DNA of 64,000 nucleotides from Macrostomum lignano (GCA_002269645.1 NIVC01002494.1:1-64000), one strand, 5' to 3'; positions 464 to 55,324 are shown, counted from the first letter of the stretch. The notes: a model not told the origin generated them from the sequence alone. Program-made: numbers and translations.

Positions 464-24313
<23,850 letters not shown>

Positions 24314-36614: not shown

Positions 36615-37674
36615 TACTATAGCTAGATACACAAAGATACTAGACATGCGAGAAAGTAAATTTAGCTAGCCTTTAATTAAGAATTTGATAAATAATATAC
36701 ACCCTTAAGAGGCTAAGCATAGCGCGCTGTCTACGTCTTGTCAAATGGGCTGTTTGCTAGACCTAGTGATGTCAAACTGAGTCTTCAATGGTCAACCGAC
36801 AACCTGCCAGGCCCTAGACTTATAAACTACCAACATCACCTCCATCATATTAAATCACGTATCCCACTCTGCTTGGTCATGCCAATAGCTAACTGATTTA
36901 CATGTCCAACAAATTAAGTTGACTCAAGTTATGCCTAAATTTAGGCCCCTTCTGGCTACCCTAATCTGTCAAGTAAAACGGGGTATGATATGATGGCAGA
37001 TGGGCCTATCAATCAGTTACATCTGCCTAGGTGGTTAAACTATGCGAAATTTAATATAATCTTGTCGAGGTTTAATAAATAGGCCTTACTAGACCTTAGA
37101 TAGGGCCAGGCCTACTAGATCTAAGCTAGATTATAAAAAAATAACTAGGCCCCTCCCCTAGTTTACTAGCCTAGCATGCATACTATATAGCAGTGCATAG
37201 GTTCAACTGATTTTGAATCAAATGTTACAAGCACTGATATTTGCATAATGATTTATGAAGTTTTAAGCCTGTAAGTACATTTTTCTATGCTTTATTTATT
37301 AAATTTATAGTAGGCCTTAACTGAAAGTAAGTGTTATAAATATGATTAATTATCAATAAATTATTAGGCCTGCTAATTACTAATATATTAGGCATAAATA
37401 AAAAAAATATATATAAGCTTATATTCAAGTTGTTCAAATAACATATATTTGAACAACTTTTGAACAGCTTTGAACAACTATACCTTAGGCATAAGGTAAA
37501 ATAAAATAGTAATGATAATTTTGTTATAATGTCTAAAATATAATAAGTATTGAATTTCAACTAGTTTCATTTGAAAAAAAACACCTTGACAGAGTTTTTG
37601 TTTTTCTAAAGTGATTAATATTGTAGTAGTGCTTTAATACAGTACGAATTTTGAACAATAAAGGTATGTTTTCT

Positions 37675-38424
37675 CCATACTCAGGAAGGTGGCCTACACG
37701 CGGGAATTTTCCCGCGTGCACAAGCCACGCTAAAATTTTGGCATGCAAAGTTGGCGTGCAAATAAGGGTCTCAAGCCACGCCTAAATTTTCGGCGTACAA
37801 GTTTTTTACTTGGCGTATAACCTTGGCGTGCAATTACAAACTGACAGTATATCAACAAGTAAGATATAGATGTATACACTATATATATAAAATATATAAA
37901 GTTAAACGTGAACAATTGAATTTGAATATTGATTAAACCAACTAATTGAGGCTACAGCCTAGCCTACAGCCAGGCCTACACTCTACAGCCTACATTAAAA
38001 TTAAAATATCGAATAACTTTTAAATGCTTTTATTTTGTGACTCTTGTAGACTTTTAGTTTATTTGTTTCTTAAAATGTGAAGAAAAAGTTTTTGATACTT
38101 ACTATGTTCTTTGTAGCGAATTTCCTTTTTTATATAAACTTTGTTTAATGTAAATAGAAAATTTATTTAAAAATAGTATCTAATACGGTTAATATTCAAA
38201 TTTTAACAATTTACTGTAGGGTAAACAGATGGTGTAACCACTTTTGGCATACAGGATTTTGGTATACACAATTTTCAGCGTATATGATTTTTGGTATTCA
38301 AGATTTTTGGCGTGCAACAGAAACGTCATGTTAAGGGTTTTAAAAAATTGGCATACATTGGCTTGCACCAAGGATTTTTCTATAAATTGATTCCGGCGTG
38401 CACTTGCTACCTTCCTGACTATGG
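37675..38424. mobile_element. 750-bp hAT-type MITE
   Basis: TIR CCATA(C/G)TCAGGAAGGT; perfect 8-bp TSD TGTTTTCT (37667-37674, 38425-38432). A related end appears at about 39954-39970. Confidence 0.85.
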
Positions 38425-39493
38425 TGTTTTCTTAGAAACCAAACTCGTGCAAAATACAAGATAAATATTTTGTTTTAATGCACTGAATATATTTGTTTTA
38501 TTTGTTGTATCAAATAATTTTGTTTTACTGTGCGAAATAAATTGGGGAATTATTTTTTGTTTTAATCATATGGGGGGGAAACCACTATATATAGGAGCAA
38601 TTTTCTAGCAAATATACTCAACTGTCTTACCGTCTCTGACTTGTGAGCAAATTCTTGCAAACAAAAATAAGCAGTTCAATCTAAAACTTTCAAAGTCTTT
38701 CCAGTTAAAATAGTGACTTATTCATTTGCAAAGTCTGAGGCACGATTCCAGGAGATTTGCTAAGAAAAGGGAATCGGGGAACAATTCACAGAAGTATTAC
38801 AAGAGAGAGATGCTGTGACCTTCTAGTCTCGGTAAACGCCCGATTAGGACTATTCACTAATACATATACTAGTACTAGACTGCTCAGGCCATAAGCTACC
38901 AGAATGCTACCAGAAAGCAAGCCATAAGCTACCAGAAAGCAAGCCATAAGCTACCAGAATGTTACCAGAAATGCTACTAAGAATGCTACCCAGAAATATT
39001 TAAATGAAATTCTAAGAAATAGTTAAGGAGTAAAAATAGAAGTGCAATCAGGATAACTTTAGTTAAGCAGACGGGAACAACACCTGTACAACTTTGGTGG
39101 CAGCTCTTAGGGTAATAAATTCTAGCACCAATAGTTAGGAGTTTAGAAAGACAGAGCCAGAAGGCCTGTCACAATATCTATATGATAATGTTCTAATCAT
39201 AGTATACCCTTTCAGCAATGAAAAACTAAAAAATCAAAGCTTGCACTAAGTTGAAGTTTCTTGTAAAACAGTTGGAAGCTAGCCAAAATCATTGATAATT
39301 TGAAGAAGGTCTATAGGGACACTGCTCCATCAGATTGAACCATTTACTACTAGATTTAGGCTTTTAAAAATGACTATTAGTTTACATGTAAAGTGTGGTA
39401 TATAAAGTGTACTTGCTCCTTTTCAAATGTTCAATTCAATTCAAACAGTGCAAAAATTTTTTTTCTAAATTTACAAACAATATTTTTCTGAAG

Positions 39494-39795
39494 CATATAT
39501 ACCCAACCTCAAAATTTTATCCATCTGGTGCAACTTAGTTTTGTCCAGATTTGCAATTTAGTTCTTCCCAATTGCAACTTAGTTCCTCCAATTGCAACTT
39601 AATTTTCATTTTGTATATGACTTGCCTTTTTCTATTTTTTTCTCTGTTTCTTTTCTCTTTTCTCCCTCTCTCTCTCTCTTCTCCTTCCTTTCTTCCAATT
39701 TTTTATTTTTTGCATTTTTAATTTTGCAACCTTGGCCAATGGCTATTTTACCTGTCTAGTTCAGATGGGTCAGATGGGTGTTAGGCATTTATATA
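39494..39795 (-). mobile_element. Short inverted relative of the 40222-42776 hAT element
   Basis: Shares both ends (CCCAACCTCAAAATTT...GCAACTTAGTTTTGTCCAGA; GGGTGTTAGGCAT) in opposite orientation; TSD not readable. Another partial left end at about 44826-44905. Confidence 0.6.
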
Positions 39796-40221
39796 CTAAA
39801 AAATTAAAATATTACAACAATTGTTATTTATTAATATTAAATTTAAAAAATCAAAATTTAAAATAAGTTTCTTAGCATGCACAGCACTTTTTTACTTGGC
39901 ACACAGTGTACAATTAAAATTTTGACTAGGGATTTGTTGTGGCACACATAGCGCACCTTCCTGACCATAGAATACCCACTGAGTCCTATGGCTATTATGG
40001 CTTGAACATTGGGTTTAATGCACTGGGTGTGCTATCAACCTGCTAAACTGCTTGAATACTGATTCAGAAAACTTTTATTAGCGCTTAGTGACTAGGGATG
40101 AAACATGGATATTTCAATACAATCCCAAGTCTTAGGTCTAATCCAAGGAGTGGCTGCCACAAAGTTCAGTGGGCCCCAAGAAGTTCTATGTGGAAGGGTT
40201 TGCAGCAAAAGACTTGGTGAC

Positions 40222-42776
40222 CATACATGCCTAACACCCGTCCGACCCATCCAAACCGGATAGGTGAAATGGCAGCTGGCCAAGGTAGGTCGCAAAATTG
40301 AAAATGCAAAAAACCAAAAATTGGGAGAAGAAAGAAAGGAGAGAAAGAGAAAAGGAAAAGAAAAGAGGGAAGAGAGAGAAGGGGAAAGAGGAGAAAGAAA
40401 GAGAAAAAGGCAAGAAAATTCATTTACAAAGTGAAATTAAGTCACAATTGGGAGGAACTAAGTTGTAATCAGGAGGAACTAAGTCGCAATTGAGAGGAAC
40501 TAAGTCACAATTAGGAGGAACTAAGTCGTAATCGGGAGGAACTAAGTCATAATCGGGAGGAACTTAGTTGCAATCGAGAGGAACTAAGTTGCAATCGGGA
40601 GGAACTAAGTCGCAATTGGGAGGAACTAAGTCGCAATCAAGAGGAACTAAGTCGCAATCGAGAGGAACTAAGTCGCAATTGAGAGGAACTAAGTTGCAAT
40701 CGAGAGGAACTAAGTCAAAATCAGGAGGAACTTAGTCGCAATCGGGAGGAACTAAGTCGCAATCGAGAGAAACTAAGTTGTCTTGAATCCCATATTCTAA
40801 ATCGTCTTAAAATCCTCTGTAAAGCCTTTCAAATACCATATCTTGTTTTCCCTGTTTGCAAAAACTGACTTGCATTGTCCAGACTCAGACTCTCATGTCT
40901 CCTCTGCACTCTCACCGTTACTCTCTTCTCCCTCCTCCTCTCTACCTCTTTATTTATCTCTTCTCCCTCGTGTTTCGTCTGTACCCTCTCATGTCTCCTG
41001 TCTCCTCTCTTCTCTCTTATTTCTCCCCTCTTCTCTCCTCTCTCATATCTCATCTCTATTCACTTATCTATCGTCTCTCCTATACCCTCTCTCTTCTCTT
41101 TTCTCTCTCCTCCCTGCTCTCGTTTATCATATCTTGTATACCCTCTCCTTTCTTATCTCCCATCTTTCTTGCTTCCTTTCTACCATCTCGATTCTATCTT
41201 CTCGCCTTTGTCTCTTCTCTTCTCTAATCTCTAATCTCTTCTCTCTCTTATTTTCTCAATCATATCTTTTCTCATTGCATCTTTCATCTGTCCTCTCTGC
41301 ACTCTTACCTTTACCCTCTTTCTTTCTCCTCACTACTTTCTTCTCTTAACTCTCTCATCTCTGATCTTTCATCTCTCTCCTCTCTTTTATTTCAGCTGTA
41401 TGCTCTTATTCCTCCTTTCTTCTCTCATCTCTCCTGTCTCCTCTCTGCTATCTCATAACTCCTCTCATATCCTCTCTTCTCTTCTCTTCTCTCTCCCTCT
41501 TCATTCCCACCTTACTCTCCTCTTCTCTCCCATCTGTCATATCTAATCTGTCCTCTCTCATATCTACTCTCTTTTCTATTATCTCTCCTCTATTTGTTTA
41601 CTCTTCTCTATACTTTCTCTTCTCTGACTCATTTAATGTGCCAAATCCATCAAAATCCTCTCCGTAAAAATGAACTCTATCAAAATCTCTTCATGAGACT
41701 GAACTTCATCAAAATCCCTTTTGATAAACTACAAATATATCTTTTCCTCGGAGGACTCTCACTTCTTTGGCCATCAGTCTCAGTCTCTGAATCTGAGTCC
41801 AAATGAATGGCTGTGTTGTGGTTGGATCCGCGCTTCAGTACCAGCATCAGTTGATGGTCAAGATTCTATAGCAATATATTCAGTATGAGCAGTGCGCCGT
41901 CGTACAAATTCTGTCTCAAGACTTCTAGTTTCTCCTTTATTTCAAAAACAGCTTCTCAGCTGACATTACTCGAGAAGAGTAATGTCGTTGCATCTGCACC
42001 ATGAATTTCAATTTTTTGCATTCTGCATAGATAGAAATCTATTAAAAGCAACAACCTCTGGATTATGCACTGCCATTAACAGTCCCTCTCTGTGTGAGCT
42101 TGCTGAACATTGGGATGGTGGTGCTTCTAGTTCCCTTGAATGTGCTGCAGCTGCACCATCACCTGATCCCCCAGGCTGCACTTAAGATTGCTGGTAAATT
42201 TCTTCTAATATCCAATGTGCGCCACAACAATCATTAACTTCTCCAGGAGTTACATGACCAAGTTTCCATCGTGTAAAGAGCAATGGCTTTCGTTCTTCAG
42301 CTGCAGAAAGGGGACACTAGTTGATGGAATAGTCTTTATGGCCATTTTCATCCCATTTATGTGCAAGATTCAATATATAGTCAGGTGCAAGTCTATCTTT
42401 AAGTGAAGTATATAACGAGTCAAAGAATGTACACCTATATATATATGAGTGCATGAGTTTCTAACTCAATTTTAAGTTAGTTTGCCAGACATACAGTACA
42501 GTATATAGGGAGTATAGCCTATAGGGTACAGGTTATAGTGCAGTTTAGTACTGCATAAGTGAATAAGATAAGTGAATGATAAATCAATCGGGAAAGAGAG
42601 TGAAGGTAGGAAAAGAGAAGAGAAATGAGGTACTTTCATTTTTCAATAAGCACGAGCACGCAACGTGTGCTACCCCCCTCCCCAGTCTTTCAGTGTGGTG
42701 GCGCATAAGTAAGTCACAAATCTGGACAAAACTAAGTTGCACTGGACAGGTGAAATTTTGAGGTTGGGCATGTATG
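40222..42776. mobile_element. 2.55-kb non-autonomous hAT-like element carrying cargo
   Basis: TIR CATACATGCC(C/T)AAC; perfect 8-bp TSD TTGGTGAC (40214-40221, 42777-42784). Contains a 20/21-bp subterminal array (GAGGAACTAAGTCGCAATCG, 40447-40780), a CT-rich tract (40885-41615) and a decayed coding-like segment. Confidence 0.88.
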
Positions 42777-43526
42777 TTGGTGACCATCTTCTATGATGTT
42801 GAGGGAGTGGTAATAGTGGACTTCTTAGAAAGCCAGATAACCATTAATGCCATCTAATATGTGTTGCTTCTGCAAAAGTTCTAATTTTTTATAGATTTTT
42901 TGTAATATATTAGTATATTCCAGTGCTGGACAACATTCTGGCATTTCTAGCACTTTTAGTACTAAAAGTTTAAAGTGGCTCTTTTTTCTAGTTCTTTTTT
43001 AGAATGCTAGACTTGGGTAATAGAAGTTACTTTTTTATAAGTCTGGTCCTCTGGTATTTAAAAATGAAATTTTAGGTGCCAAACAGCTAACTTAGCAATA
43101 AATATTTCCCAAAAGTGCAAAACTTTCACCAAAATACTTGTATAATTATACAAAGATAAGAAAGAGATGATCCTAGATTAAATGGTTTTTACTTTTTAAG
43201 TTAAAGCATGTTTTAGTATTATATACTAATAGAATCATAGAATAGAATAGCTGCTATAAAACTACAGCATAATACAAGTAGGATAACAAGAATGACCCAA
43301 ACAAACTAAAGTTGCCTAAAGCATTCTACTCATTGTGATATATCTATTGGACAAAAATTGTCTTCATAAAAAATTCTGAAAAGTCAGAAGCAACATTTGA
43401 AAATTGGCCTCCATCTTTTTTATAAATCCTAAGTGTAATTTCCTGATATTCTACAAATCCTTGTTTTGTAAAAGGTTTTGTTTATTCACTCAAATTTTGG
43501 ATGCAGTAATAATAAAAATATTTATA

Positions 43527-43939
43527 AGCAAAGTGCATAAAAGAGGCACTTAAGGGGTCTTTTTCAAGCATGTTTTGGAAATGCACTTGTATACATATTT
43601 ATGCCACACATGTACACCTTATGCACCTCTAATTCACCTTTCATGCACTTTCTGTGCCCTTTTAGCACCTTTCCTTCACCTGCTGTGCCTCACTTGTGAG
43701 CCTGCTGTTTACCTTTTGTGCACTTCCAGTGCCCCTTATGCACCACACCTTTACTGCCCCTACTGCTGCAACCAATGAAAATTAAGAATTCACCTACTGC
43801 CTAACCACTTCACCAATTTTACAACTTTTATGCCTCTTTTCAAAAATATTGATGACATTTAGGCAAAAAGGTGCACTCAGGGCATTTCTAAAGCACACAC
43901 AAAATAGGCCACTAAAGTGCCTCTTTTGTGCACCTTGCT
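43527..43939. mobile_element. MITE with 31-bp TIRs
   Basis: Left AGCAAAGTGCATAAAAGAGGCACTTAAGGGG versus reverse-complemented right AGCAAGGTGCACAAAAGAGGCACTTTAGTGG; TSD unclear. Confidence 0.7.
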
Positions 43940-44029
43940 CACCTTTTATGCCTCTGCAGGTGCATAACTTTTCTAACGGGCCACAAAGTCATCCCCACAA
44001 TCAGCAGCCCTGATGATATGGTCTTTGTC

Positions 44030-44221
44030 CAAGGGTGTAGGGAGGGGGGATAGGGGGATGTATCCCCCCAAAGAGCCTGACCAAAACTTTCTTGTTGCCC
44101 TTTGTTGCTATACACGCTACCATGTGACTCTGTCATGGTAGTTTTACCTTGGTGTATCCCCCTGTAGAAAATTCACCTTGGTGTATCCCCCCCCCATAGG
44201 AAATTCCTGGCTATGCCCCTG
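44030..44221. mobile_element. 192-bp hAT-type MITE
   Basis: Ends CAAGGGTGTAG and reverse-complemented CAGGGGCATAGCCAGG; TSD TCTTTGTC/TCTCTGTC (7 of 8 match). Confidence 0.72.
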
Positions 44222-45039
44222 TCTCTGTCACTGTTGCTTACAATAGCGCACTGCCAAGGCTGTTGTTCCATGATATCTTCATTGAATTCTGCTTCAAATT
44301 CACTGATTCCATCTTCTTCCAGCTAAGTGTTTGAATTGAAGTTCTGCTTGTTCCTTTTGAAGAAGACTTTGTTCAAAATTGGAGGTAAAATGGTGTATTA
44401 GTGCTAATAGAAAAGTGAAAATAGGCCTATTAGATGCTAATTGGGCTTAACATCAATTCTTGATAAAAATTGCAAAAATTTGATATTGTTAAACACTTTG
44501 AATTTTCCCTCAAAAACAACATCTTTAGGAGTATGGCTAGGGCCTAGTAATTGTTTAAAAATGGTTGTTATTTATTGGGATACTAGTTCCATAGGCTTTA
44601 AAAATTTTAGCTAAGGAAAATTGGTTTGAATCTATTACTAGGCATTTTAATAATAAAATTTGATAGCATATTTTTATAGTATAGAACAAAGAATCAACTT
44701 TTGTTCTTTTATATGATATATTCTTTATAAAGTAAGCTATTTTAATTTTAAGAAATATTGATTAATAATAAGATAAAATATATTATATGTATATTTAAAA
44801 TAGCAAGAAGATTAATAGTGTTAACATATACATGCCCAACACCCAGCCAACCTGGCTTATTTGGCCAGGTGGCAAGAGGTCTGGCCAAGGTAAGTTGCAA
44901 AAATGCCAACTCAAAAATATAGACATAGTGCTAATTAGATGACAAGACAAGGCATTGTTTCTTTTTATATCTGTACAAAACTTTTGATTCAAGTATTTCT
45001 TCTACTATATTATTCTACTTGTTCAAAATTGACTCACAG

Positions 45040-48000
45040 GTTCAACACCCCAGATAAGTTTGTTATTCAGCCGCACAATGGCCAGGAAACACTTATTATT
45101 GACAGGCAGACAGGCGATATGTCAATCACTAGTAAGTAGACAGTATTTTTTACAAGCAAAATATTGATAAGCCTAATTCACAAGCAATCAGTGCAGTGAT
45201 GTCTTTCCGTGTTTCATCAGATGTGCGGATCAGCTGGTTTCCTGGCTCTCCTACAATTGATTGACATTAAATTTTTTGCTGAGCGCTGATTTACCAACTT
45301 TCTGTACTGTTTAACGAAATTAGGGGGTGTTTACTAATTAACAGCAGTGCCAAATGATGTGTACATCCGTGTTTCATCCGATGGAGCAGCCTTTCATGGC
45401 TTCCAATAAGTGACAACATTCGATATCTGCTGATGTCACAACGCTGCTCTGAGAATGATTTAAGTCCCCGATTAGAATTCCCTATCTCACTCTCGATAAT
45501 CCCGATCTGTAATCCCGAGTTCCTTATCTCACTCTCGATAATCCCGATCTCTAATCCCGAGTTCCTTATCTCACTCTCGATAATCCCGATCTCTAATCCC
45601 GAGTTCCTTATCTCACTCTCGATAATCCCGATCTCTAATCCCGAGTTCCTTATCTCACTCTCGATAATCCCGATCTCTAATCCCGAGTTCCTTATCTCAC
45701 TCTCGATAATCCCGATCTCTAATCCCGAGTTCCTTATCTCACTCTCGATAATCCCGATCTCTAATCCCGAGTTCCTTATCTCACTCTCGATAATCCCGAT
45801 CTCTAATCCCGAGTTCCTTATCTCACTCTCGATAATCCCGATCTCTAATCCCGAATTCCTTATCTCACTCTCGATAATCCCGATCTCTAATCCCGAGTTC
45901 CTTATCTCACTCTCGATAATCCCGATCTCTAATCCCGAATTCCTTATCTCACTCTCGATAATCCCGATCTCTAATCCCTAATTCTCTATCTCACTCTCGA
46001 TATTCCCGATCTCAATTTCGAATTCCATATCTCACAAAAGAAAGAAAGAAATGCAAAGATCAAGCAGCTAGCAATTTAGAATTTCCACTGCCGCTCATTC
46101 CTAATCCTAATCCCACAACCACTCGCCAACCCAGTGGACTCATCCGCTGTCTCCCGCCTCATCGTTGGTACACCACCGACGACAATCTACGGCCTGTGGG
46201 GCGTCCTGCAGCTGCTGTCTGGCCCTCACCTGTTGATAGTGCAGGCCCGTCGGCATGTCGGCAACCTGCGCGGTCACAGTCTGTGGCGTGTAGAGTCTGC
46301 GGACATTTTGCCGTATTGCCGATCTAGCCTGCATTTAACTGAGACTGCCGCGGCTGACAACGAGATTTACCTGCAGCTGGTTCGCGAGTCCCTGCGCACG
46401 CCAGGTTATTATTTCTCCTACACCACAGATCTCAGTCGCAGTCTTCAAAGCGCCTGTCGATACGCGGCGGAATCGGTTGACTACACGGCGACACCGGCGG
46501 CCGCTGCTGCTGTTGTTGATGCGACACCGTTGTGCGATCGAGCCGACGATCGATTTGTATGGAATTATAATTCTCTGATCAAGCTGAGACGCTTTCCCAG
46601 ATTTGCTCTGCCAGTTGTGCACGGCTTTGTCTGCGTCAGGACTGTGCCGTTCAAGGTGAGGCCTTTCTAATCTCCAGGCATCGCAAAACAACCTCTTGGC
46701 CAACTTTCGTGCACATACAAGTCCAAAATTAGTGTGGAATGGAACCAGAAGTTGTGGCGCGAGAGTCATACTGATCTGCTCTGCTCCCTTCCTCAGAAGA
46801 ACCCTAGCATAGGTTTAAACTTAGGACCGCTTTAGTAAGCCTAGTTTCGTAATTTTTTATTTCAAAAAAGATATTTCAATTGCATAATAATGATTCTGAT
46901 CTTGCTACTGTTAGTAGCACTACTATTAAGCAAGTAAATTAACGGTATAATAAACCGAATCGCCGCCAGGGCCGGACCATAGACTACGCGCTGATTAGCC
47001 GGCGCTCCCGGCACAGGGCCGGAGTCCGCTACTACACACGCGGCCTCGACGAGGATGGCTACGCGGCTAATTTTGTTGAAACTGAACAGATTCTGTCGGT
47101 GCCTTCGTCAGCTGGGACTAATCAAACAGCTAATCCGAATGCTCAGGCTCTGTTCAGCTTTGTCCAAACTCGCGGCTCAGTGCCATTAATCTGGTCTCAG
47201 TATCCAAATTTATTGTACAAGCCAGCGCCAACTATTAGTCAAGATTGGGATAAACAGTTCGATGCGTTTGTTGCCCATTTTAGCGATCAGGTGAGCGCCT
47301 GTTTTGCTTGCCATCTGACAGTAGTTTGACTTAGGGGTGGGGGCGGTGCCGCAATGATGTGATTATCCGTGTTTCATCCGATTGGAGCTGTCACTTTGAC
47401 CTCCAATGATTGACATTTTTAATAACTGAGCACCTTGCAAAAATATGGGAGATTTGTCGCTTAGTCTTATGCTATATATGAGGATAAATGTTCTTCTCTA
47501 GTTCTGATTCTCAATCCTAAGAATCCCAATTCTTAGTCCCAAACACCGATTTTAAGAATCCCAATCATTTGTCCCCAATACCGATTCCAAGAATCCCAAT
47601 CATGAGTCCCAAATACCGATTCCAAGAATCCCAATCATGAGTCCCAAATACCGATCCCAAGGATCCCAATCATGAGTCCCAAATACCGATTCCAAGAATC
47701 CCAATCATGAGTCCCCAATACCGATTCCAAGGATCCCAATCATGAGTCCCAAATACCGATTCCAAGAATCCCAATCATGAGTCCCAAATACCGATTCCAA
47801 GAATCCCAATCATGAGTCCCAAATACCGATTCCAAGAATCCCAATCATGAGTCCCAAATACCGATTCCAAGGATCCCAATCATGAGTCCCAAATACCGAT
47901 TCCAAGAATCCCAATCATGAGTCCCAAATACCGATTCCAAGAATCCCAATCATGAGTCCCAAATACCGATTCCATGGATCCCAATCATGAGTCCCAAATA

Positions 48001-51000
48001 CCGATTCCAAGAATCCCAATCATGAGTCCCAAATACCGATTCCAAGGATCCCAATCATGAGTCCCAAATACCGATTCCAAGAATCCCAATCATGAGTCCC
48101 AAATACCGATTCCAAGGATCCCAATCATGAGTCCCAAATACCGATTCCAAGAATCCCAATCATGAGTCCCAAATACCGATTCCATGGATCCCAATCATGA
48201 GTCCCAAATACCGATTCCAAAGATCCTGTTCCTAATCCTTAGTCTCAGCCTAATCCTAATAACTCTTATCCCCTAATCTATCTATAATCTAATATATAAG
48301 TCTAATCTATAAAAGATAGATTAGGCCTGATTTATAACTCAGCTGTCAGTCTTCCAATGATGTCAATCCGTGTTTCATCTGATTGCAACTACTATTAGCA
48401 ATATGCTGCAAACTTATCATTTGCTGCTGATGGAGGCTGCGCAATGCATAAATATTGTTATTTTTTGCTGACTAACAATATAAATATATTAGCCTAATTT
48501 CTTTCAGGTGTTCACCCGTTGCTATGGCAACCAGGTAATTGTCAATTTATTAGACGCCGTAGGCAAAGAACGCGAACTGTGCGCCCAGTTCAGCCGGATG
48601 TGCAGCCTGACAGAGGTGACTCGCCGTTTTGATGGTCTCCGCTACGAGCACTTCGACTTTCATCGCGAGTGCAGCCGGTTGAGATGGGACCGGCTTAGTC
48701 TGCTGCTGGAGCGGACTGAGCCAGACTTTGACTCTATGGGATATTTCCAGGCCGCTCCTGATGGTGAGCAACCGGGATGTGCACTTGTGTTTCTTATTAT
48801 CACAGAAAATTTTTATATATGCTCAGCTATCTGATAGTTTATTGAAAACACTTTATATAATGCCACTTTTGGACAAGGCTCCCAATCCAAGAATCCCACA
48901 GTTCATCTCAATTCCAAGAATCCCACAGTTCATCTCAATTCCAAGAATCCCACAGTTCATCTCAATTCCAAGAATCCCACAGTTCATCTCAATTCCAAGA
49001 ATCCCACAGTTCATCTCAATTCCAAGAATCCCACAGTTCATCTCAATACCAAAAATCCCACACCCCATCTCAATTCCAAGAATCCCACACCCCATCCCAG
49101 TTCCAAGAATCCCACACCCTATCTCAATTCCAAGAATCCCACACCCTATCTCAGTTCCAAGAATCCCACACCATATCTCAATTCCAAGAATCCCACACCC
49201 CATCTCAATTCCAAGAATCCCACACCCCATCCCAGTTCCAAGAATCCCACACCCTATCTCAATTCCAAGAATCCCACACCCTATCTCAGTTCCAAGAATC
49301 CCACACCATATCTCAATTCCAAGAATCCCACACCCCATCTCAATTCCAAGAATCCCACACCCCATCCTAATTCCAAGAATCCCACACCCCATCTCAATTT
49401 CAAGAATCCCACACCCCATCCTAATTCCAAGAATCCCACACCCTATCTCAATTCCAAGAATCCCACACCCCATCTCAATTTCAAGAATCCCACACCCCAT
49501 CCTAATTCCAAGAATCCCACACCCCATCCTAATTCCAAGAATCCCACACCCCATCCTAATTCCAAGAATCCCACACCCCATCCTAATTCCAAGAATCCCA
49601 CACCCCATCTCAATTCCAAAAATCCCACACCCCATCCTAATTCCAAGAATCCCACACCCTATCTCAATTCCAAGAATCCCACACCCCATCCTAATTCCAA
49701 GAATCCCACACCCCATCTCAATACTAAAAATCCCACACCCCATCTCAATTCCGAAAATCCCACACCCCATCTCAACTCCAAGAATCCTACACCCCATCTC
49801 AATTCCAAGAATCCCACACCCCATCTCAATTTCAAGAATCCCACACCCCATCCTAATTCCAAGAATCCCACACCCCATCTCAATTCCAAGAATCCCACAC
49901 CCCATCCTAATTCCAAGAATCCCACACCCCATTTCAATTTCAAGAATCCCACACCCCATCTCAATTCCAAGAATCCCACACCCCATCTCAATTCCAAGAA
50001 TCCCACACCCCATCCTAATTCCAAGAATCCCACACCCCATCTCAATTCCAAGAATCCCACACCCCATCTCAATTCCAAGAATCCCACACCCCATCTCAAT
50101 TCCAAGAATCCCACACCCCATCTCAATTCCAAGAATCCCACACCCCATCCTAATTCCAAGAATCCCACACCCCATCCTAATTCCAAGAATCCCACACCCC
50201 ATCTCAATTTCAAGAATCCCACACCCCATCCTAATTCCAAGAATCCCACACCCCATCTCAATTCCAAGAATCCCACACCCCATCCTAATTCCAAGAATCC
50301 CACACCCCATCTCAATTCCAAGAATCCCACACTCCATCTCAATTTCAAGAATCCCACACCCCATCTCAATTCCAAGAATCCCACACCCCATCTCAATTCC
50401 AAGAATCCCACACCCCATCCTAATTCCAAGAATCCCACACCCCATCTCAATTCCAAGAATCCCACACTCCATCTCAATTTCAAGAATCCCACACCCCATC
50501 TCAATTCCAAGAATCCCACACCCCATCTCAATTCCAAGAATCCCACACCCCATCTCAATTCCAAGAATCCCACACTCCATCTCAATTTCAAGAATCCCAC
50601 ACCCCATCTCAATTCCAAGAATCCCACACCCCATCTCAATTCCAAGAATCCTACACCCCATCCTAATTCCAAGAATCCCACACCCCATCTCAATTCCAAG
50701 AATCCCACATTCCCTAGCTAAATCCCTCTGACCACGTCATCCACAAAACTGCCTTTACTGCCTTCAGTGTATTTCTAGTCCATGTACATCTTCGTGTACG
50801 GTACATTACTGGTTGCGTTTGCGCCAATAGCAGGTTGTTGACATCTTGCTACTGAACTGACAGGACCAATCAAAGATGCCGAATCATACATGCGCAACCT
50901 CCAAAATTCGGTCGGCCTTGCGACGTAGTTTTTGGCCAAAAATGCGACTTACATGTAAAAAAACAACGAAAAATTAACGTAACTTTGGGTAAACGGCAAG

Positions 51001-54000
51001 AGTAACTATGACTGTCTTATTAAGTCAAAATGCCTCGTCAGCTACTTAGTACTAATACTAAGTAGTGGGCATTTTCGGGTGGGCATTTTTGCGACTTCCT
51101 TGGTTGGCCGCCAAATCGGTCGGCCGGATCGGCCGACTCGGCCGACTGTTGCACATGTATGTGCCCGAATGGCCCATCTTATTAGTGTCTGTGGCGCAGA
51201 ATAAGTGCTGGACTGAAGTAATAATACTAAACATGGAAACCAAAAAACATAAATTGTATTTGGATAAGTTTTCAACGATTTTGGTTCAGAAAACCTCCCC
51301 AAATGACAGCGTTTAAAAAGAGCGTTGCAAAACAATGAGCAGAGATAAAGGCTTGTTTATGCTAACAAGAAACTTATTGCCTGCAGATTAGCTAATAATC
51401 ATAAAGAGAAGCATAAGAAAAAATGGCCATAAAGCAATATGAAAGATGCGCGCCTGACAAAAACCTGAATATATAGGAAAGAGCAACTAGCCTAAAAAAC
51501 TGGCTTTTTATAACAAAGAAAGTGCGTGTTTAACAAAGAACTCGACTAAAAAAAATTATGCTATTCGTCAAATATACAACTGTTTGTTATGCTGCAAGAC
51601 TCGATAAGTTTTAGCAAGTGGGCCGTTGGTTCGATCGAGTCACCGCTGCATGCCTTCAGCACAGACAATGAGTGACGTGGATTATTAAAGCTGGTTGCAA
51701 CATTTGGTCCCAACTTGTGTTAAGCTGGCGCTCACCTGTTTGAGCAGGGCAGTCCGTCATCAAGCCAGCTGCAGGTTGCTCAGGTACGACTCCAGCCTGT
51801 TAATCTCATTTTTCAAAATTTCCTCTCGCTCGCGAAATCCCATGTAGCGACTCAGGGCCTCCTCCTCGGCTGCCGCGGCGGCAGCGGCCCCGGTGAACCG
51901 GCGGTGCTGCGGGCCCTGGCTGACGGAGCGCCGGCGGCCGCCACCTCCGCCCAGGTCCCCTGCGCCGGGCCAGTCTTGCTGAAGACTCCGGGCCAGGGAC
52001 TCCACTATCGAGTTGCCTGCGGGGCGGGGGAGGTGCAGACTGCTAGCAGTGCTGGGGCGCCATGTCAGGTGGATCGGGAGGAATCTGCAGGCTGCATCTG
52101 GCAGTGCTGGGGCGCCATGTCAGGTGGATCGGGAGGAATCTGCAGGCTGCATCTGGCAGTGCTGGGGCGCCATGTCAGGTGGATCGGGAGGAATCTGCAG
52201 GCTGCATCTGGCAGTGCTGGGGCGCCACGTCAGGTGGATCGGGAGGAATCTGCAGGCTGCATCTGGCAGTGCTGGGGCGCCATGTCAGGTGGATCGGGAG
52301 GAATCTGAAGGCTGCATCTGGCGGTGCTGGGGCGCCATGTCAGGTGGATCGGGAGGAATCTGCAGGCTGCATCTGGCAGTGCTGGGGCGCCATGTCAGGT
52401 GGATCGGGAGGAATCTGCAGGCTGCATCTGGCGGTGCTGGGGCGCCATGTCAGGTGGTTCAGGATCTGTTTACAGAACCAAAAAGACCAATATTGAACGA
52501 AAACACGCGTCAGAACTCAGGCTCAGGTGTGAGTCATGACGAGCTCCTCACCCTGCTTCATGGCTCCATCTCCATCCTCTGGCCCAGTTCTCTGCAGGTC
52601 TCCGGGCCGGCCCTTGCCCAGCCCGTAGCGCTGGTTCAGGAAGTACAGGCTGGTGTTGTCAGGCGTCCACTGCCCGACCTTCAGCCTGACGGCCACCTCC
52701 TTCTCGTTGTAGTCCTTGCGCAGCTTGTAGTCGGGAAAGTGCTGCTCAATGATGCGATTGCACTTGTCTACGCTGAGCTCGCTCGGCCCTTGATCTCGAA
52801 GATGCAGAATCGCATGGCCTGCGTGCCTCCGAGCTTTCTGGTGAGGATTTTGTTTTTAACGGCAAACACGCAGCTGGTGCGGTTGCAGGCGGCCTTGACG
52901 CGCGTGTCGCTGAACATTTTCAAGCTGGCGTCTGTGATCTGCAGCAGGTACTGCTTCTTGTAGCTTAGTCCGGCGTACATCTCTTGCAGTTGGTATTTGG
53001 ACTTTTGTGCAAAAATAAAATAACTACGCTCGTTAAGAGTAATCTTCCGAGTTCTTGTCTGTTGCTAAAATTGCTTATTTGACTTGAAATTTTCGATTAT
53101 TCTGCTAGCTTACGCGACTTTTACCATAGACAATACTCGATCTAGCTTTTATCTGTGAGTCAGCAAAACAAGTACGAGATGTCTTTTATCGATGTGTTTT
53201 AGACAAATTATAGTTAATAACGATTTAAGCTTGGTGATCAGAGGGGGTTTAGTGGAGCTCAAAAAGAAAGATTCAAGCTCGTACTATTAATATTCAGAAA
53301 GAAAAGAATGTGAAGCGGATTCCCTATGGTTTGTTAGTTGAAAAGGACTTCCACAGGCGAGGTTCTGGCTCTGTGGTTTAGGTTTAGCTGACGAAGAGTG
53401 CTGAGTAGGAAGTCAGTAACCGGTCCTGGCCTATTGCGGGCACACTGCTCTTTTCAGTACACGCGCATTTAGAAATATTAAGCTGCGAGTTAACTTGTCG
53501 CTGTGACATTGCCATCCCCTCTCCTCCCTAGGCTCCCCGCAGCGCACCCAGCACTCGGTATTTCGCGTCAACTGCATCGACTGTCTAGACCGCACCAATG
53601 TTGCCCAGTGCCTGCTGGCTAGGCGCGCCCTTGCCCGTCAGCTGGCCGATCTTGGCTATGCCGCTCTGTTTGCTAACAACGCTACTAGCAGTAATAGTAG
53701 CGAATCCAAAACCGATCCGGACGCGGAGTCTCTAGAATCGGTCATCAAGCTTGCCTGGTCGGACAATGCCGACGAATTGTCTTTGCAGTACGCCGGCACC
53801 GGCGCTTTGAAGGCAGATTTCACTCGGACTGGCCGGCGCACCAAATCCGGCGCCCTGCGCGACGCCTATTTTAGCGCAGTACGCTACGCCAGGAATAATT
53901 TCTACGACGGCTGGCGACAGGACGCTATAGATTTGTTGCTGGGCAATTACCTGCCGGAGCGAGGCGAGTTGAGTCCGTTTGCTCAGGGTCGCGATTGGAA

Positions 54001-55324
54001 AGTCTGGCTGTTGCCGTCAGTGCTGCTGTTTGGATTAACTATGCTCACTATGGGCGCTCTGCTGCCGCCAGGTGAGCTGTTAGTTGCTCTTCTATTAAGG
54101 CTCATTATAAACCTGAAGCGATTTGAGGGGTTGTCAGACCCGCTGATGGAATTTGAGGGGTTGTCAGACCCGCTGATGGAATTTGAGGGGTTGTCAGACC
54201 CGCTGATGGAATTTGAGGGGTTGTCAGACCCGCTGATGGAATTTGAGGGGTTGTCAGACCCGCTGATGGAATTTGAGGGGTTGTCAGACCCGCTGATGGA
54301 ATTTGAGGGGTTGTCAGACCCGCTGAGGGGATTTGAGGGGTTGTCAGACCCGCTGATGGGATTTGAGGGGTTGTCAGACCAGCTGATAGGATTTGAGGGG
54401 TTGTCAGACCCGCTGAGGGGATTTGAGGGGTTGTCAGACCAGCTGATAGGATTTGAGGGGTTGTCAGACCCGCTGATGGGATTTGGGGGTTTGTCAGACC
54501 CGCTGATGGGATTTGGGGGTTTGTCAGACCCGCTGATGGAATTCGAGAGGTTGTCAGACCCGCTGAGGGGATTTGAGGGGTTGTCAGACCCGCTGAGGGG
54601 ATTTGAGGGGTTGTTAAAGCCGCTGAGGGGATTTGAGGGGTTGTAAAACCCGCTGAGGGGATTTAAGGGGTTGTCAGACCCGCTGAGGGGATTTGAGGGG
54701 TTGTAAAAGCCGCTGAGGGGATTTGAGGGGTTGTCAGACCCTCTGATGGGATTTGAGGGATTGTCAGACCCGCTGAGGGGATTTGAGGGGTTGTCAGACC
54801 CTCTGATGGGATTTGAGGGATTGTCAGACCCGCTAAGGGGATTTGAGGGTTGTCAGACCCTCTGATGGGATTTGAGGGATTGTCAGACCCGCTGAGGGGA
54901 TTTAAGGGGTTGTCAGACCCGCTGACGTGGATTTGAGGGGTTGTCAGACCCGCTGATGGGGATTTGAGGGGTTGTCAGACCCGCTGACGGGGATTTGAGG
55001 GGTTGTCAGACCCGCTGATGGGGATTTGAGGGGTTGTCAGACCCGCTGACGGGGATTTGAGGGGTTGTCAGACCCGCTGACGGGGATTTGAGGGGTTGTT
55101 CAGACTCGCTGAGTGGGTTTGAGGATATCAGCCACATGGACACAGCAAAGCTAGCTTAATTCTTTAACGTTCCAGAGCACTGGTCGGAGCAGATGTTATT
55201 CTCGCTATTCTGGTGCACATCTGTGGTGTTGGCAATATTCGGCATTTTCTACTACGGCGAAGACTTCGTTGACCGGCCCCGATTGGGCCAGAAATTCAGT
55301 CGCCAAAAACGATCAACTGTTTGA
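45040..55324 (+). CDS. SACM1L: SAC1 phosphatidylinositol-4-phosphate phosphatase, 5' incomplete. Exons: 45040-45131, 46135-46655, 46970-47290, 48508-48763, 53532-54071, 55176-55324
   Basis: Phase-consistent GT-AG model. Motifs [51 protein letters not shown]...RWDRL, catalytic [44 protein letters not shown], two C-terminal TM segments and [11 protein letters not shown] short phase-2 first exon is expected but was not found. Confidence 0.95.
45186..45291 (+). ncRNA. Box C/D snoRNA copy 1 (28S guide), SAC1 intron
   Basis: Stem AATCAGTGC/GCGCTGATT; box C GTGATGT 45196-45202; guide TCCGTGTTTCA 45206-45216; D' CAGA 45218-45221; C' TGATTGA 45258-45264; D CTGA 45279-45282. Confidence 0.85.
45343..45448 (+). 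ncRNA. Box C/D snoRNA copy 2 (28S guide)
   Basis: Box C ATGATGT 45354-45360; ATCCGTGTTTCA 45365-45376; D' CCGA 45378-45381; D CTGA 45430-45433; external stem AGCAGTG/CGCTGCT. Confidence 0.8.
45465..46035. repeat. 42-bp minisatellite in SAC1 intron
   Basis: Unit TCCCGAGTTCCTTATCTCACTCTCGATAATCCCGATCTCTAA, about 13 copies. Confidence 0.95.
47345..47434 (+). ncRNA. Box C/D snoRNA copy 3 (28S guide)
   Basis: Stem GGTGC/GCACC; box C ATGATGT 47354-47360; ATCCGTGTTTCA 47365-47376; D' CCGA 47378-47381; C' ATGATTGA 47406-47413; D CTGA 47426-47429. Confidence 0.87.
47515..48228. repeat. 35-bp minisatellite in SAC1 intron
   Basis: Unit TCCCAATCATGAGTCCCAAATACCGATTCCAAGAA, about 19 copies, lying between snoRNA copies 3 and 4. 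Confidence 0.95.
48347..48439 (+). ncRNA. Box C/D snoRNA copy 4 (28S guide)
   Basis: Stem CAGTCTTCCA/TGGAGGCTG; box C ATGATGT 48357-48363; ATCCGTGTTTCA 48366-48377; D' CTGA 48379-48382; D CTGA 48427-48430. Confidence 0.83.
48883..50710. repeat. 27-bp minisatellite in SAC1 intron, about 68 copies
   Basis: Unit AATCCCACACCCCATCTCAATTCCAAG; source of the 667-aa and 611-aa pseudo-ORFs. Confidence 0.97.
50987..51050 (+). other. Degenerate 64-nt fragment of 28S rRNA (helix 69 / R2 target region)
   Basis: GGGTAAACGGCAAGAGTAACTATGACTGTCTTATTAAGTCAAAATGCCTCGTCAGCTACTTAGT aligns without gaps to the eukaryotic LSU consensus GGGTAAACGGCGGGAGTAACTATGACTCTCTTAAGGTAGCCAAATGCCTCGTCATCTAATTAGT, 52 of 64 identical. 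No flanking rRNA similarity seen. Confidence 0.85.
51760..53152 (-). CDS. Nested antisense gene of unknown function, about 250 aa. Exons 53152-53114, 53001-52552 (one +1 correction near 52787), 52016-51760
   Basis: Canonical GT-AG junctions (CAG/GTAAGC, AAG/GTGAGG, CGCAG) that are phase-consistent once one C is restored in CCC 52787-52789. Host-like GC3-rich codons. Reads [24 protein letters not shown]...[31 protein letters not shown]...[21 protein letters not shown]. The start could be the ATG at 52980 or lie upstream. Confidence 0.72.
52044..52458. repeat. 55-bp minisatellite in the nested gene intron
   Basis: Unit GAATCTGCAGGCTGCATCTGGCAGTGCTGGGGCGCCATGTCAGGTGGATCGGGAG, about 7.5 copies. 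Confidence 0.95.
54118..55105. repeat. 30-bp minisatellite in the last SAC1 intron
   Basis: Unit ATTTGAGGGGTTGTCAGACCCGCTGATGGA and variants ([10 protein letters not shown] pseudo-ORF). Confidence 0.95.

Follow-up and report, generated by a model that had tools for sequence, protein, structure and literature searches.

Human 28S ribosomal RNA carries a 2'-O-methylated adenosine, Am1323 (Am1310 in the older numbering), that has been assigned to the box C/D small nucleolar RNA (snoRNA) SNORD126 (PMC9941101). Formerly classed as an orphan, SNORD126 was subsequently found to methylate 28S in a conditional manner (PMC9226514), and the human Am1310 site is variably methylated (PMC8677024; PMC10939407). 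One snoRNA per intron is the predominant arrangement in animals, but not an absolute rule (PMC11028025). Intronic snoRNA clusters are known from rice and Drosophila, where they have been described as sources of individual snoRNAs (PMC2780460). Here we report on four elements, e1 to e4, that lie, two to an intron, within a SAC1-like gene of the flatworm Macrostomum lignano, in a 64-kilobase (kb) stretch of its genome (GCA_002269645.1, NIVC01002494.1:1-64000; hereafter the window, whose first letter is position 1). With a probability of roughly 0.8, we read them as paralogous box C/D snoRNA genes, oriented in the sense of their host. On this reading they would be previously unannotated members of a known and widespread SNORD126-type family, in which the SAC1 host and the pairing within introns are minor variations. 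A search of a library of papers found no report of M. lignano snoRNA genes.

Architecture of the four elements

The four elements are built in one common order: a 5' stem, a C box, 3-5 nucleotides (nt), the guide TCCGTGTTTCA, a T and a D' box. After a spacer of 25-44 nt, some copies have a C' box, which, where it can be located, lies 12-14 nt before the D box; the 3' stem closes the element (Table 1). The C box reads RTGATGT in all four, as GTGATGT in e1 and ATGATGT in the others. The preliminary description of this locus had claimed an invariant guide followed by T, a D' box and a terminal CTGA, and this holds in four of four elements, with a D' box that is canonical in e4 only. The C' box is TGATTGA in e1 and e3 and weak in e2. 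Terminal stems measure 5-9 base pairs (bp), with one mismatch in e2 and a 4-nt spacer in e3. Pairwise identity among the paralogues is 60-70%; e4 is the most diverged, and its stem sequence is unlike that of e1-e3. The claim that everything outside the motifs has diverged was too strong, as e1-e3 also have in common a GTGC stem part, the C' box with the bases that come after it (TGATTGACATT in e1 and e3) and an internal hairpin.

Neither the guide nor its combination with a C box recurs elsewhere in the window. The guide occurs there exactly four times, always on the plus strand (starting at 45206, 45366, 47366 and 48367), and the pattern TGATGT-N2-5-TCCGTGTTTCATCNGAT was observed four times against 0.00 expected from 100 dinucleotide-preserving shuffles. 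When both strands of the 64 kb were scanned strictly, with a C box, a D box and at least 5 bp of stem required, e1 and e4 alone were returned, against 0.33 candidates per shuffled window. The minimum-free-energy fold closes the terminal stem in e1 (z = -2.6) and e3 (z = -2.3) and is uninformative for e2 (z = -1.2) and e4 (z = -0.2); by itself, such folding is weak evidence for the elements. One further candidate, a copy of the guide with one mismatch at 40099-40109 on the minus strand, has neither C nor D box and was put down to chance (12.7 bits, E 1.4).

Open frames spliced at GT..AG borders give a single continuous coding sequence at 37248-55324 on the plus strand, and under this gene model all four elements are intronic and sense to the host gene. 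The product is a SAC1-like phosphoinositide phosphatase with a SacI homology domain (Syja_N, PF02383, E 1.4e-75) and the catalytic motif CIDCLDRT. It is about 100% identical to the M. lignano proteins PAA52869 and PAA57388, and the copy in the window is BOX15_Mlig019972g1. The starts of e1 and e3 are 55 nt and 54 nt from the 5' splice site, and the 3' end of e4 is 69 nt from the 3' splice site.

Guide register and predicted 28S target

The 11-nt UCCGUGUUUCA upstream of D' is complementary to the universally conserved UGAAACACGGA of 28S, and TGAAACACGGACCAAGG serves as a large-subunit (LSU) primer in fungi, protists, nematodes, kinorhynchs, cestodes and trematodes. The earlier proposal of one shared guide directed against the conserved LSU sequence TGAAACACGGA is supported. 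Guide and D' register are the same as in Rfam SNORD126. When the SNORD126 consensus AGUCCGUGUUUCAGCUGAU is set against AAUCCGUGUUUCAUCUGAU of e4, the guide is identical and the gap to D' is the same single nucleotide.

Box C/D snoRNAs direct methylation to the ribose of the nucleotide that pairs with the fifth position upstream of D or D'. Counting upstream from D' in the flatworm elements, the first guide nucleotide, U, is unpaired; the second, A, faces U of 28S; the third, C, faces G; the fourth and fifth, both U, face the first and second A of GAAAC. Because the guide and the D' register equal those of SNORD126, the fifth-nucleotide rule predicts the middle A of GAAAC in UGAAACACGGA as the 2'-O-methylation target of e1-e4, and the same register marks the elements as putative flatworm representatives of the SNORD126 type. 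In human 28S the homologous position is A1310, or A1323 by the newer count, 3 nt 5' of the U18/SNORD18 site. SNORD18 is the guide for human A1313, so that the second A of GAAAC is A1310. On the box D side, no two of the four copies have the same sequence, and the relatives described below vary there as well, so the region upstream of box D in e1-e4 probably guides nothing. No equivalent site or guide was found in the main text of the paper that maps 2'-O-methylated nucleotides in Drosophila.

Relatives in environmental sequences

Metagenome contigs were scanned once with the pattern ATGATG-N3-18-TCCGTGTTTCANCYGA, which gave 94 stretches (loci L005-L098). About 85 of these are C/D shapes, with a C' box that is mostly TGATTA, a CTGA D box, 55-76 nt from C to D and stems of varied sequence. 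From these, 40 distinct relatives with a stem of at least 5 bp were aligned. Both-side changes occur at eight of eight stem pairs, and the covariation score is 0.94, compared with 0.04-0.17 for controls with a slid partner column. As the selection demanded the inner five pairs, the percentage paired is not independent, but the diversity of pair types is.

A covariance model was built from the 40 environmental relatives only. In the window, this model, whose source sequences had been fetched with the window's own motif, recovered e4 at 33.8 bits (E 1.1e-5), e3 at 32.3 bits over its full length (E 2.6e-5) and e1 at 29.0 bits (E 1.6e-4). It matched the 5' half only of e2 (24.9 bits, E 1.6e-3), and found nothing besides e1-e4 in the window below E = 1. 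Together with the box architecture, the stems and the gene model, this recovery supports the preliminary view of four paralogous intronic box C/D elements, two per intron. Two of the relatives match SNORD126 over their full length (34.4 bits, E 3.8e-4, and 32.8 bits, E 1.1e-3), subject to the same caveat of retrieval by motif. Within that caveat, the relatives may link the two as intermediates, with e1-e4 at 25-34 bits on one side and SNORD126 at E of about 1e-3 on the other. In the 20 loci searched, every relative stays below the Rfam gathering scores (for SNORD126 the best is 34 against 55 bits). The curated SNORD126 model, RF01168, which was presumably built from vertebrate sequences, misses the environmental relatives found here.

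The remaining stretches, about nine of the 94, are GC-rich, have long open reading frames and no D box, and were set aside as probable bacterial coding sequence. GC-rich matches such as L015, L017, L030 and L082 have in common ATGATGAACATCAAC..CG.TCCGTGTTTCAGCTGA without a D box or stem; they are likely conserved bacterial coding sequence and false positives.

The hosts of the relatives are varied. A tblastn search with SAC1 proteins against the 94 environmental loci gave no match; no SAC1 exon lies near the relatives, and the host association is therefore not common to them. Judged by flanking exons, where these are recognisable, two relatives (L014 and L076) are in genes for a SERCA-like P-type cation ATPase, the one in L014 between two same-strand exons. 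Another lies in the gene of an EF-hand protein (L025), and a DEAD-box helicase adjoins a fourth (L022). In L059 the host encodes an RSE1/DDB1/CPSF1-propeller protein of the SF3B3 kind and holds three copies on the minus strand. Two of these, 295 nt apart, lie between two same-strand exons and apparently in a single intron, since there is no exon-length open frame between them. This family has shifted from one unrelated host to another, and its members undergo tandem duplication. Given the ATPase, SF3B3-like and EF-hand hosts and the pair in L059, a non-translation host and two copies per intron are normal for this snoRNA family. The novelty of SAC1 as a host that the preliminary description implied is not supported: the guide is that of a known family, snoRNAs of this type are widespread in environmental contigs of eukaryotes, and relatives sit in unrelated non-ribosomal genes. 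A further locus, L069, holds a SNORD126-like element and, 600 nt downstream on the same strand, a true SNORD18 (44.5 bits, above gathering). This adjacency of guides for methylations 3 nt apart hints at a common origin or a shared host.

Gene copies, paralogue and minisatellites

About 160 kb of the genome was inspected. Besides a second record of the window copy with the same element spacing (L004), it includes two more gene copies, L001 and L003, which are 98-99% identical and contain all four elements in unchanged order. Across the three gene copies, boxes and guide show no change except in e2 of L001, and e3 is identical in all three. In L001, a 44-nt deletion (L001 16071-16140; window 45399-45442) has cost e2 its C' box, D box and 3' stem; this reflects either a disabled paralogue or an error in the assembly. 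With four elements per gene copy and three near-identical gene copies, there is redundancy. M. lignano has two groups of SAC1 paralogues, and the host belongs to the more divergent one (43% vs 50% identity to annelid SAC1). The 30-kb locus of the other paralogue, L002, contains no copy of the elements; its best match to the covariance model, at 12459-12519 (E 0.55), was rejected as it has no terminal stem.

The 35-bp minisatellite that the preliminary description placed between e3 and e4 is real, but it is not a mark of the snoRNA pair. A 42-bp array lies in the other snoRNA intron, and at least 20 minisatellite arrays, including one at 54113-55124, are found throughout the window, so the array between e3 and e4 is not snoRNA-specific. 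The 42-, 35- and 27-bp arrays, in three introns of the host, all contain an AATCCC(G/A/C)A-like core. The spacing of e3 and e4 in the three gene copies is 1001, 1421 and 1736 nt, from which copy numbers of about 20, 32 and 41 units of the 35-mer follow. Elsewhere in the host gene, the intron 48764-53531 contains an annotated opposite-strand gene of 95 amino acids (52768-53055, minus strand), adjoining a GC-rich 55-bp minisatellite (52046-52464).

Table 1. Positions of the four elements, their host gene, the minisatellites and selected environmental relatives. Positions are those of the window unless a locus is named.
Feature	Position	Strand	Size	Parts and remarks
e1	45187-45290	+	104 nt	stem 45187-45194/45283-45290, ATCAGTGC/GCGCTGAT; C box GTGATGT 45196-45202; guide TCCGTGTTTCA 45206-45216; D' CAGA 45218-45221; C' TGATTGA 45258-45264; D CTGA 45279-45282
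e2	45347-45439	+	93 nt	stem GTGCCA 45347-45352/TGTCAC 45434-45439, one C-U mismatch; C box ATGATGT 45354-45360; guide 45366-45376; D' CCGA 45378-45381; weak C' GTGACA 45410-45415; D CTGA 45430-45433
e3	47345-47434	+	90 nt	stem GGTGC 47345-47349/GCACC 47430-47434; C box ATGATGT 47354-47360; guide 47366-47376; D' CCGA 47378-47381; hairpin TGGAG..CTCCA; C' TGATTGA 47407-47413; D CTGA 47426-47429
e4	48348-48438	+	91 nt	stem CTTCCA 48351-48356/TGGAGG 48431-48436, extendable with CAG/CTG; C box ATGATGT 48357-48363; guide 48367-48377; D' CTGA 48379-48382; no clear C'; D CTGA 48427-48430
Host gene, coding exons	37248-37270; 45040-45131; 46135-46655; 46970-47290; 48508-48763; 53532-54071; 55176-55324	+		
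Host intron between coding exons 2 and 3	45132-46134	+		GT..AG; holds e1, e2 and the 42-bp minisatellite
Host intron between coding exons 4 and 5	47291-48507	+		holds e3, the 35-bp minisatellite and e4
42-bp minisatellite	45478-46035		13.3 copies	downstream of e2
35-bp minisatellite	47519-48220		20.1 copies	between e3 and e4
27-bp minisatellite	48886-50709			in the host intron after the two snoRNA introns
Relative in ATPase host, L014	260-285			
Relative in ATPase host, L076	5258-5283			
Copies in SF3B3-like host, L059	3772-3796; 6669-6693; 6964-6988	-		
SNORD126-like element and SNORD18, L069	165-237 and 806-874			both on the same strand

Weighing the alternatives

A number of observations weigh against the reading of e1-e4 as box C/D snoRNA genes of the SNORD126 type. 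The last base of the C box is U, not A, in all four elements, as it is in 26 of the 40 environmental relatives. D' is canonical in e4 alone (CCGA in e2 and e3 and CAGA in e1 are non-canonical), and inspection of the sequence of e4 found no recognisable C' box; degenerate internal boxes are frequent among genuine snoRNAs. Three of the elements, e1, e2 and e3, lie about 700-1100 nt from the 3' splice site, and in vertebrates a great distance from it is unfavourable for splicing-dependent snoRNA processing. The preliminary description had suggested a check against Rfam. At gathering thresholds there was no match anywhere in the window, in E-value mode the whole region gave chance-level matches only, and a search with e3 found no SNORD126 match; e4 matched SNORD126 weakly (RF01168; 13.8 bits, E 1.8, against a gathering score of 55 bits), with the same guide and D' register. 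The test with the covariance model is partly circular, given relatives retrieved with the window's motif, although its C' box, D box and stem columns are independent. The target match was judged on UGAAACACGGA as a pan-eukaryote LSU primer site that includes cestodes and trematodes. Purifying selection was sought among the three gene copies, whose 98-99% identity is too high to be informative. Finally, non-expressed C/D snoRNAs of Drosophila are mostly in hosts of miscellaneous function (PMC11014333). Several of these points would also fit most or all copies being inactive young duplicates, snoRNA pseudogenes, with the working guide elsewhere in the genome: the degenerate D' of e1-e3, the weak or absent C' of e2 and e4, the three copies far from the 3' splice site, the host that is not translation-related, and also the truncated e2 of L001. 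We consider this improbable. At 60-70% identity all four elements keep the C box, the guide with its T, the D box, a D' in the expected place and a stem that pairs, and the stem of e4 pairs with a different sequence; such retention is the pattern expected under selection, not decay, and no other copy was seen in the 64-kb window or the 30-kb paralogue locus. That the motif arose by chance, or that the elements are pieces of a dispersed repeat without snoRNA function, in a genome that is extremely repeat-rich and of which about 160 kb was inspected, is hardly credible against the shuffles, the sense and intronic position of every copy, the rest of the window and L002, which are free of copies, and a full C/D architecture common to about 85 independent environmental sequences. 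The preliminary description had itself named a dispersed repeat unrelated to introns or transcription direction as what would speak against it, and nothing of that kind emerged within the 160 kb.

The two remaining alternatives concern which guide the elements are and what is made from them. Orthology with U18/SNORD18, which would move the target to the A homologous to human 28S-A1313 (yeast A649), might be suspected from the 10-nt overlap of the guides (GAAACACGGA) and from one environmental relative that weakly matches SNORD18 (26.3 bits, E 0.18). The register speaks against it. The U18/SNORD18 guide GGUCCGUGUUUC is directly followed by UGA, so that its fifth position is the A after the C of GAAAC-A. 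In the SNORD18 consensus GGUCCGUGUUUCUGA D' comes directly after GUGUUUC, whereas the flatworm elements have three extra nucleotides (GUGUUUCAU-CYGA), which shift the fifth position to the A three nucleotides upstream. A SNORD18 (RF00093) match is lacking in the window even when E values up to 10 are admitted, and in L069 the true SNORD18 coexists with a separate SNORD126-like element, which argues for distinct genes; we thus regard orthology with U18 as very improbable. Compatible with the SNORD126-type reading is the proposal that the pairs are processed not, or not only, into single snoRNAs. Exonucleases would be halted by both snoRNPs (ribonucleoprotein particles) of an intron, and a snoRNA-ended long noncoding RNA (sno-lncRNA) would accumulate; its length would be about 1.09 kb from e3 through the minisatellite to e4 (47345-48438) and about 0.25 kb from e1 to e2 (45187-45439). 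In each intron both C/D elements have their C box, D box and stem intact, two snoRNAs per intron are the stated condition for such RNAs in mammals (PMC11028025), and nearly the whole of the second intron lies between its would-be caps e3 and e4. On the other side, the intronic clusters of rice and Drosophila yield individual snoRNAs (PMC2780460), and the minisatellite body varies among gene copies and belongs to a kind of array that fills the window, so that it looks like neutral repeat DNA. On balance, accumulation of a sno-lncRNA is possible but rather unlikely. A more specific form of it, in which e3 and e4 snoRNPs would cap a stable nuclear sno-lncRNA whose body of about 20-41 units of the 35-bp minisatellite served as a multivalent platform or sponge for an RNA-binding protein, is a long shot; if true, this minisatellite-bodied sno-lncRNA would be the first outside mammals and the first with a tandem-repeat body.

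Under the SNORD126-type reading, e1-e4 would be co-transcribed within the host pre-mRNA, and the core C/D proteins would bind where boxes C and D and the terminal stem form a kink-turn. Release would proceed through splicing, debranching and exonucleolytic trimming, and for copies in a shared intron an extra endonucleolytic cut may be needed. The distance of e4 from the 3' splice site would favour splicing-dependent release. Being far from that site, e1-e3 would rely on their terminal stems (as many as 8-9 bp in e1) and perhaps also on endonucleolytic cleavage between paired copies. Fibrillarin would then 2'-O-methylate the middle A of GAAAC.

If this reading is correct, four snoRNA genes are added to the annotation of a flatworm that serves as a model of regeneration, and one specific 28S 2'-O-methylation site is predicted in M. 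lignano. Our understanding of snoRNAs in general is unchanged by these elements. Together with the environmental relatives, they suggest that the SNORD126 type is not confined to vertebrates but is widespread, switches hosts and is poorly caught by the model now in Rfam. The methylation that corresponds to human Am1310 may therefore be old.

Comparison with known systems

The closest described system is SNORD126. The flatworm elements resemble it in the antisense UCCGUGUUUCA and the single nucleotide that separates this from D', hence in the predicted target nucleotide. They also resemble it in the order of the C, D, C' and D' boxes, in the intronic position within a protein-coding host unrelated to translation, and in a box D-side antisense region without a conserved target. 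They differ in length (90-104 nt against about 77 nt, with a longer D'-C' spacer that holds an internal hairpin), in a D' that is CCGA or CAGA in three of four copies, and in a duplex of 11 bp instead of 12 bp, as A or U replaces the G before UCCG. The host gene is another one, and it holds four copies in two introns, not one. SNORD18 (U18, yeast snR18), likewise of the box C/D class, has the same 28S helix as its pairing partner, and 10 nt of its guide overlap with that of the flatworm elements; by contrast, its D' register is off by 3 nt, and its target is the A1313 equivalent, where that predicted for the flatworm elements is the A1310 equivalent.

In the environmental relatives, too, the C box is ATGATG(T), D' belongs to the CYGA type, C' to the TGATT(A/G)A type and D is CTGA, and the guide is the same. 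They likewise have a terminal stem with a one-nucleotide 5' spacer and a sense intronic position, and they occur in varied hosts and in tandem copies. The relatives are shorter, however (55-76 nt from C to D), and their D' is the canonical CTGA save for one CCGA (L079). With the intronic clusters of rice and Drosophila and with the sno-lncRNAs of mammals, the locus has in common more than one snoRNA per intron (PMC2780460; PMC11028025); it differs from them in that one of its introns carries a 35-bp minisatellite of variable length between the two copies.

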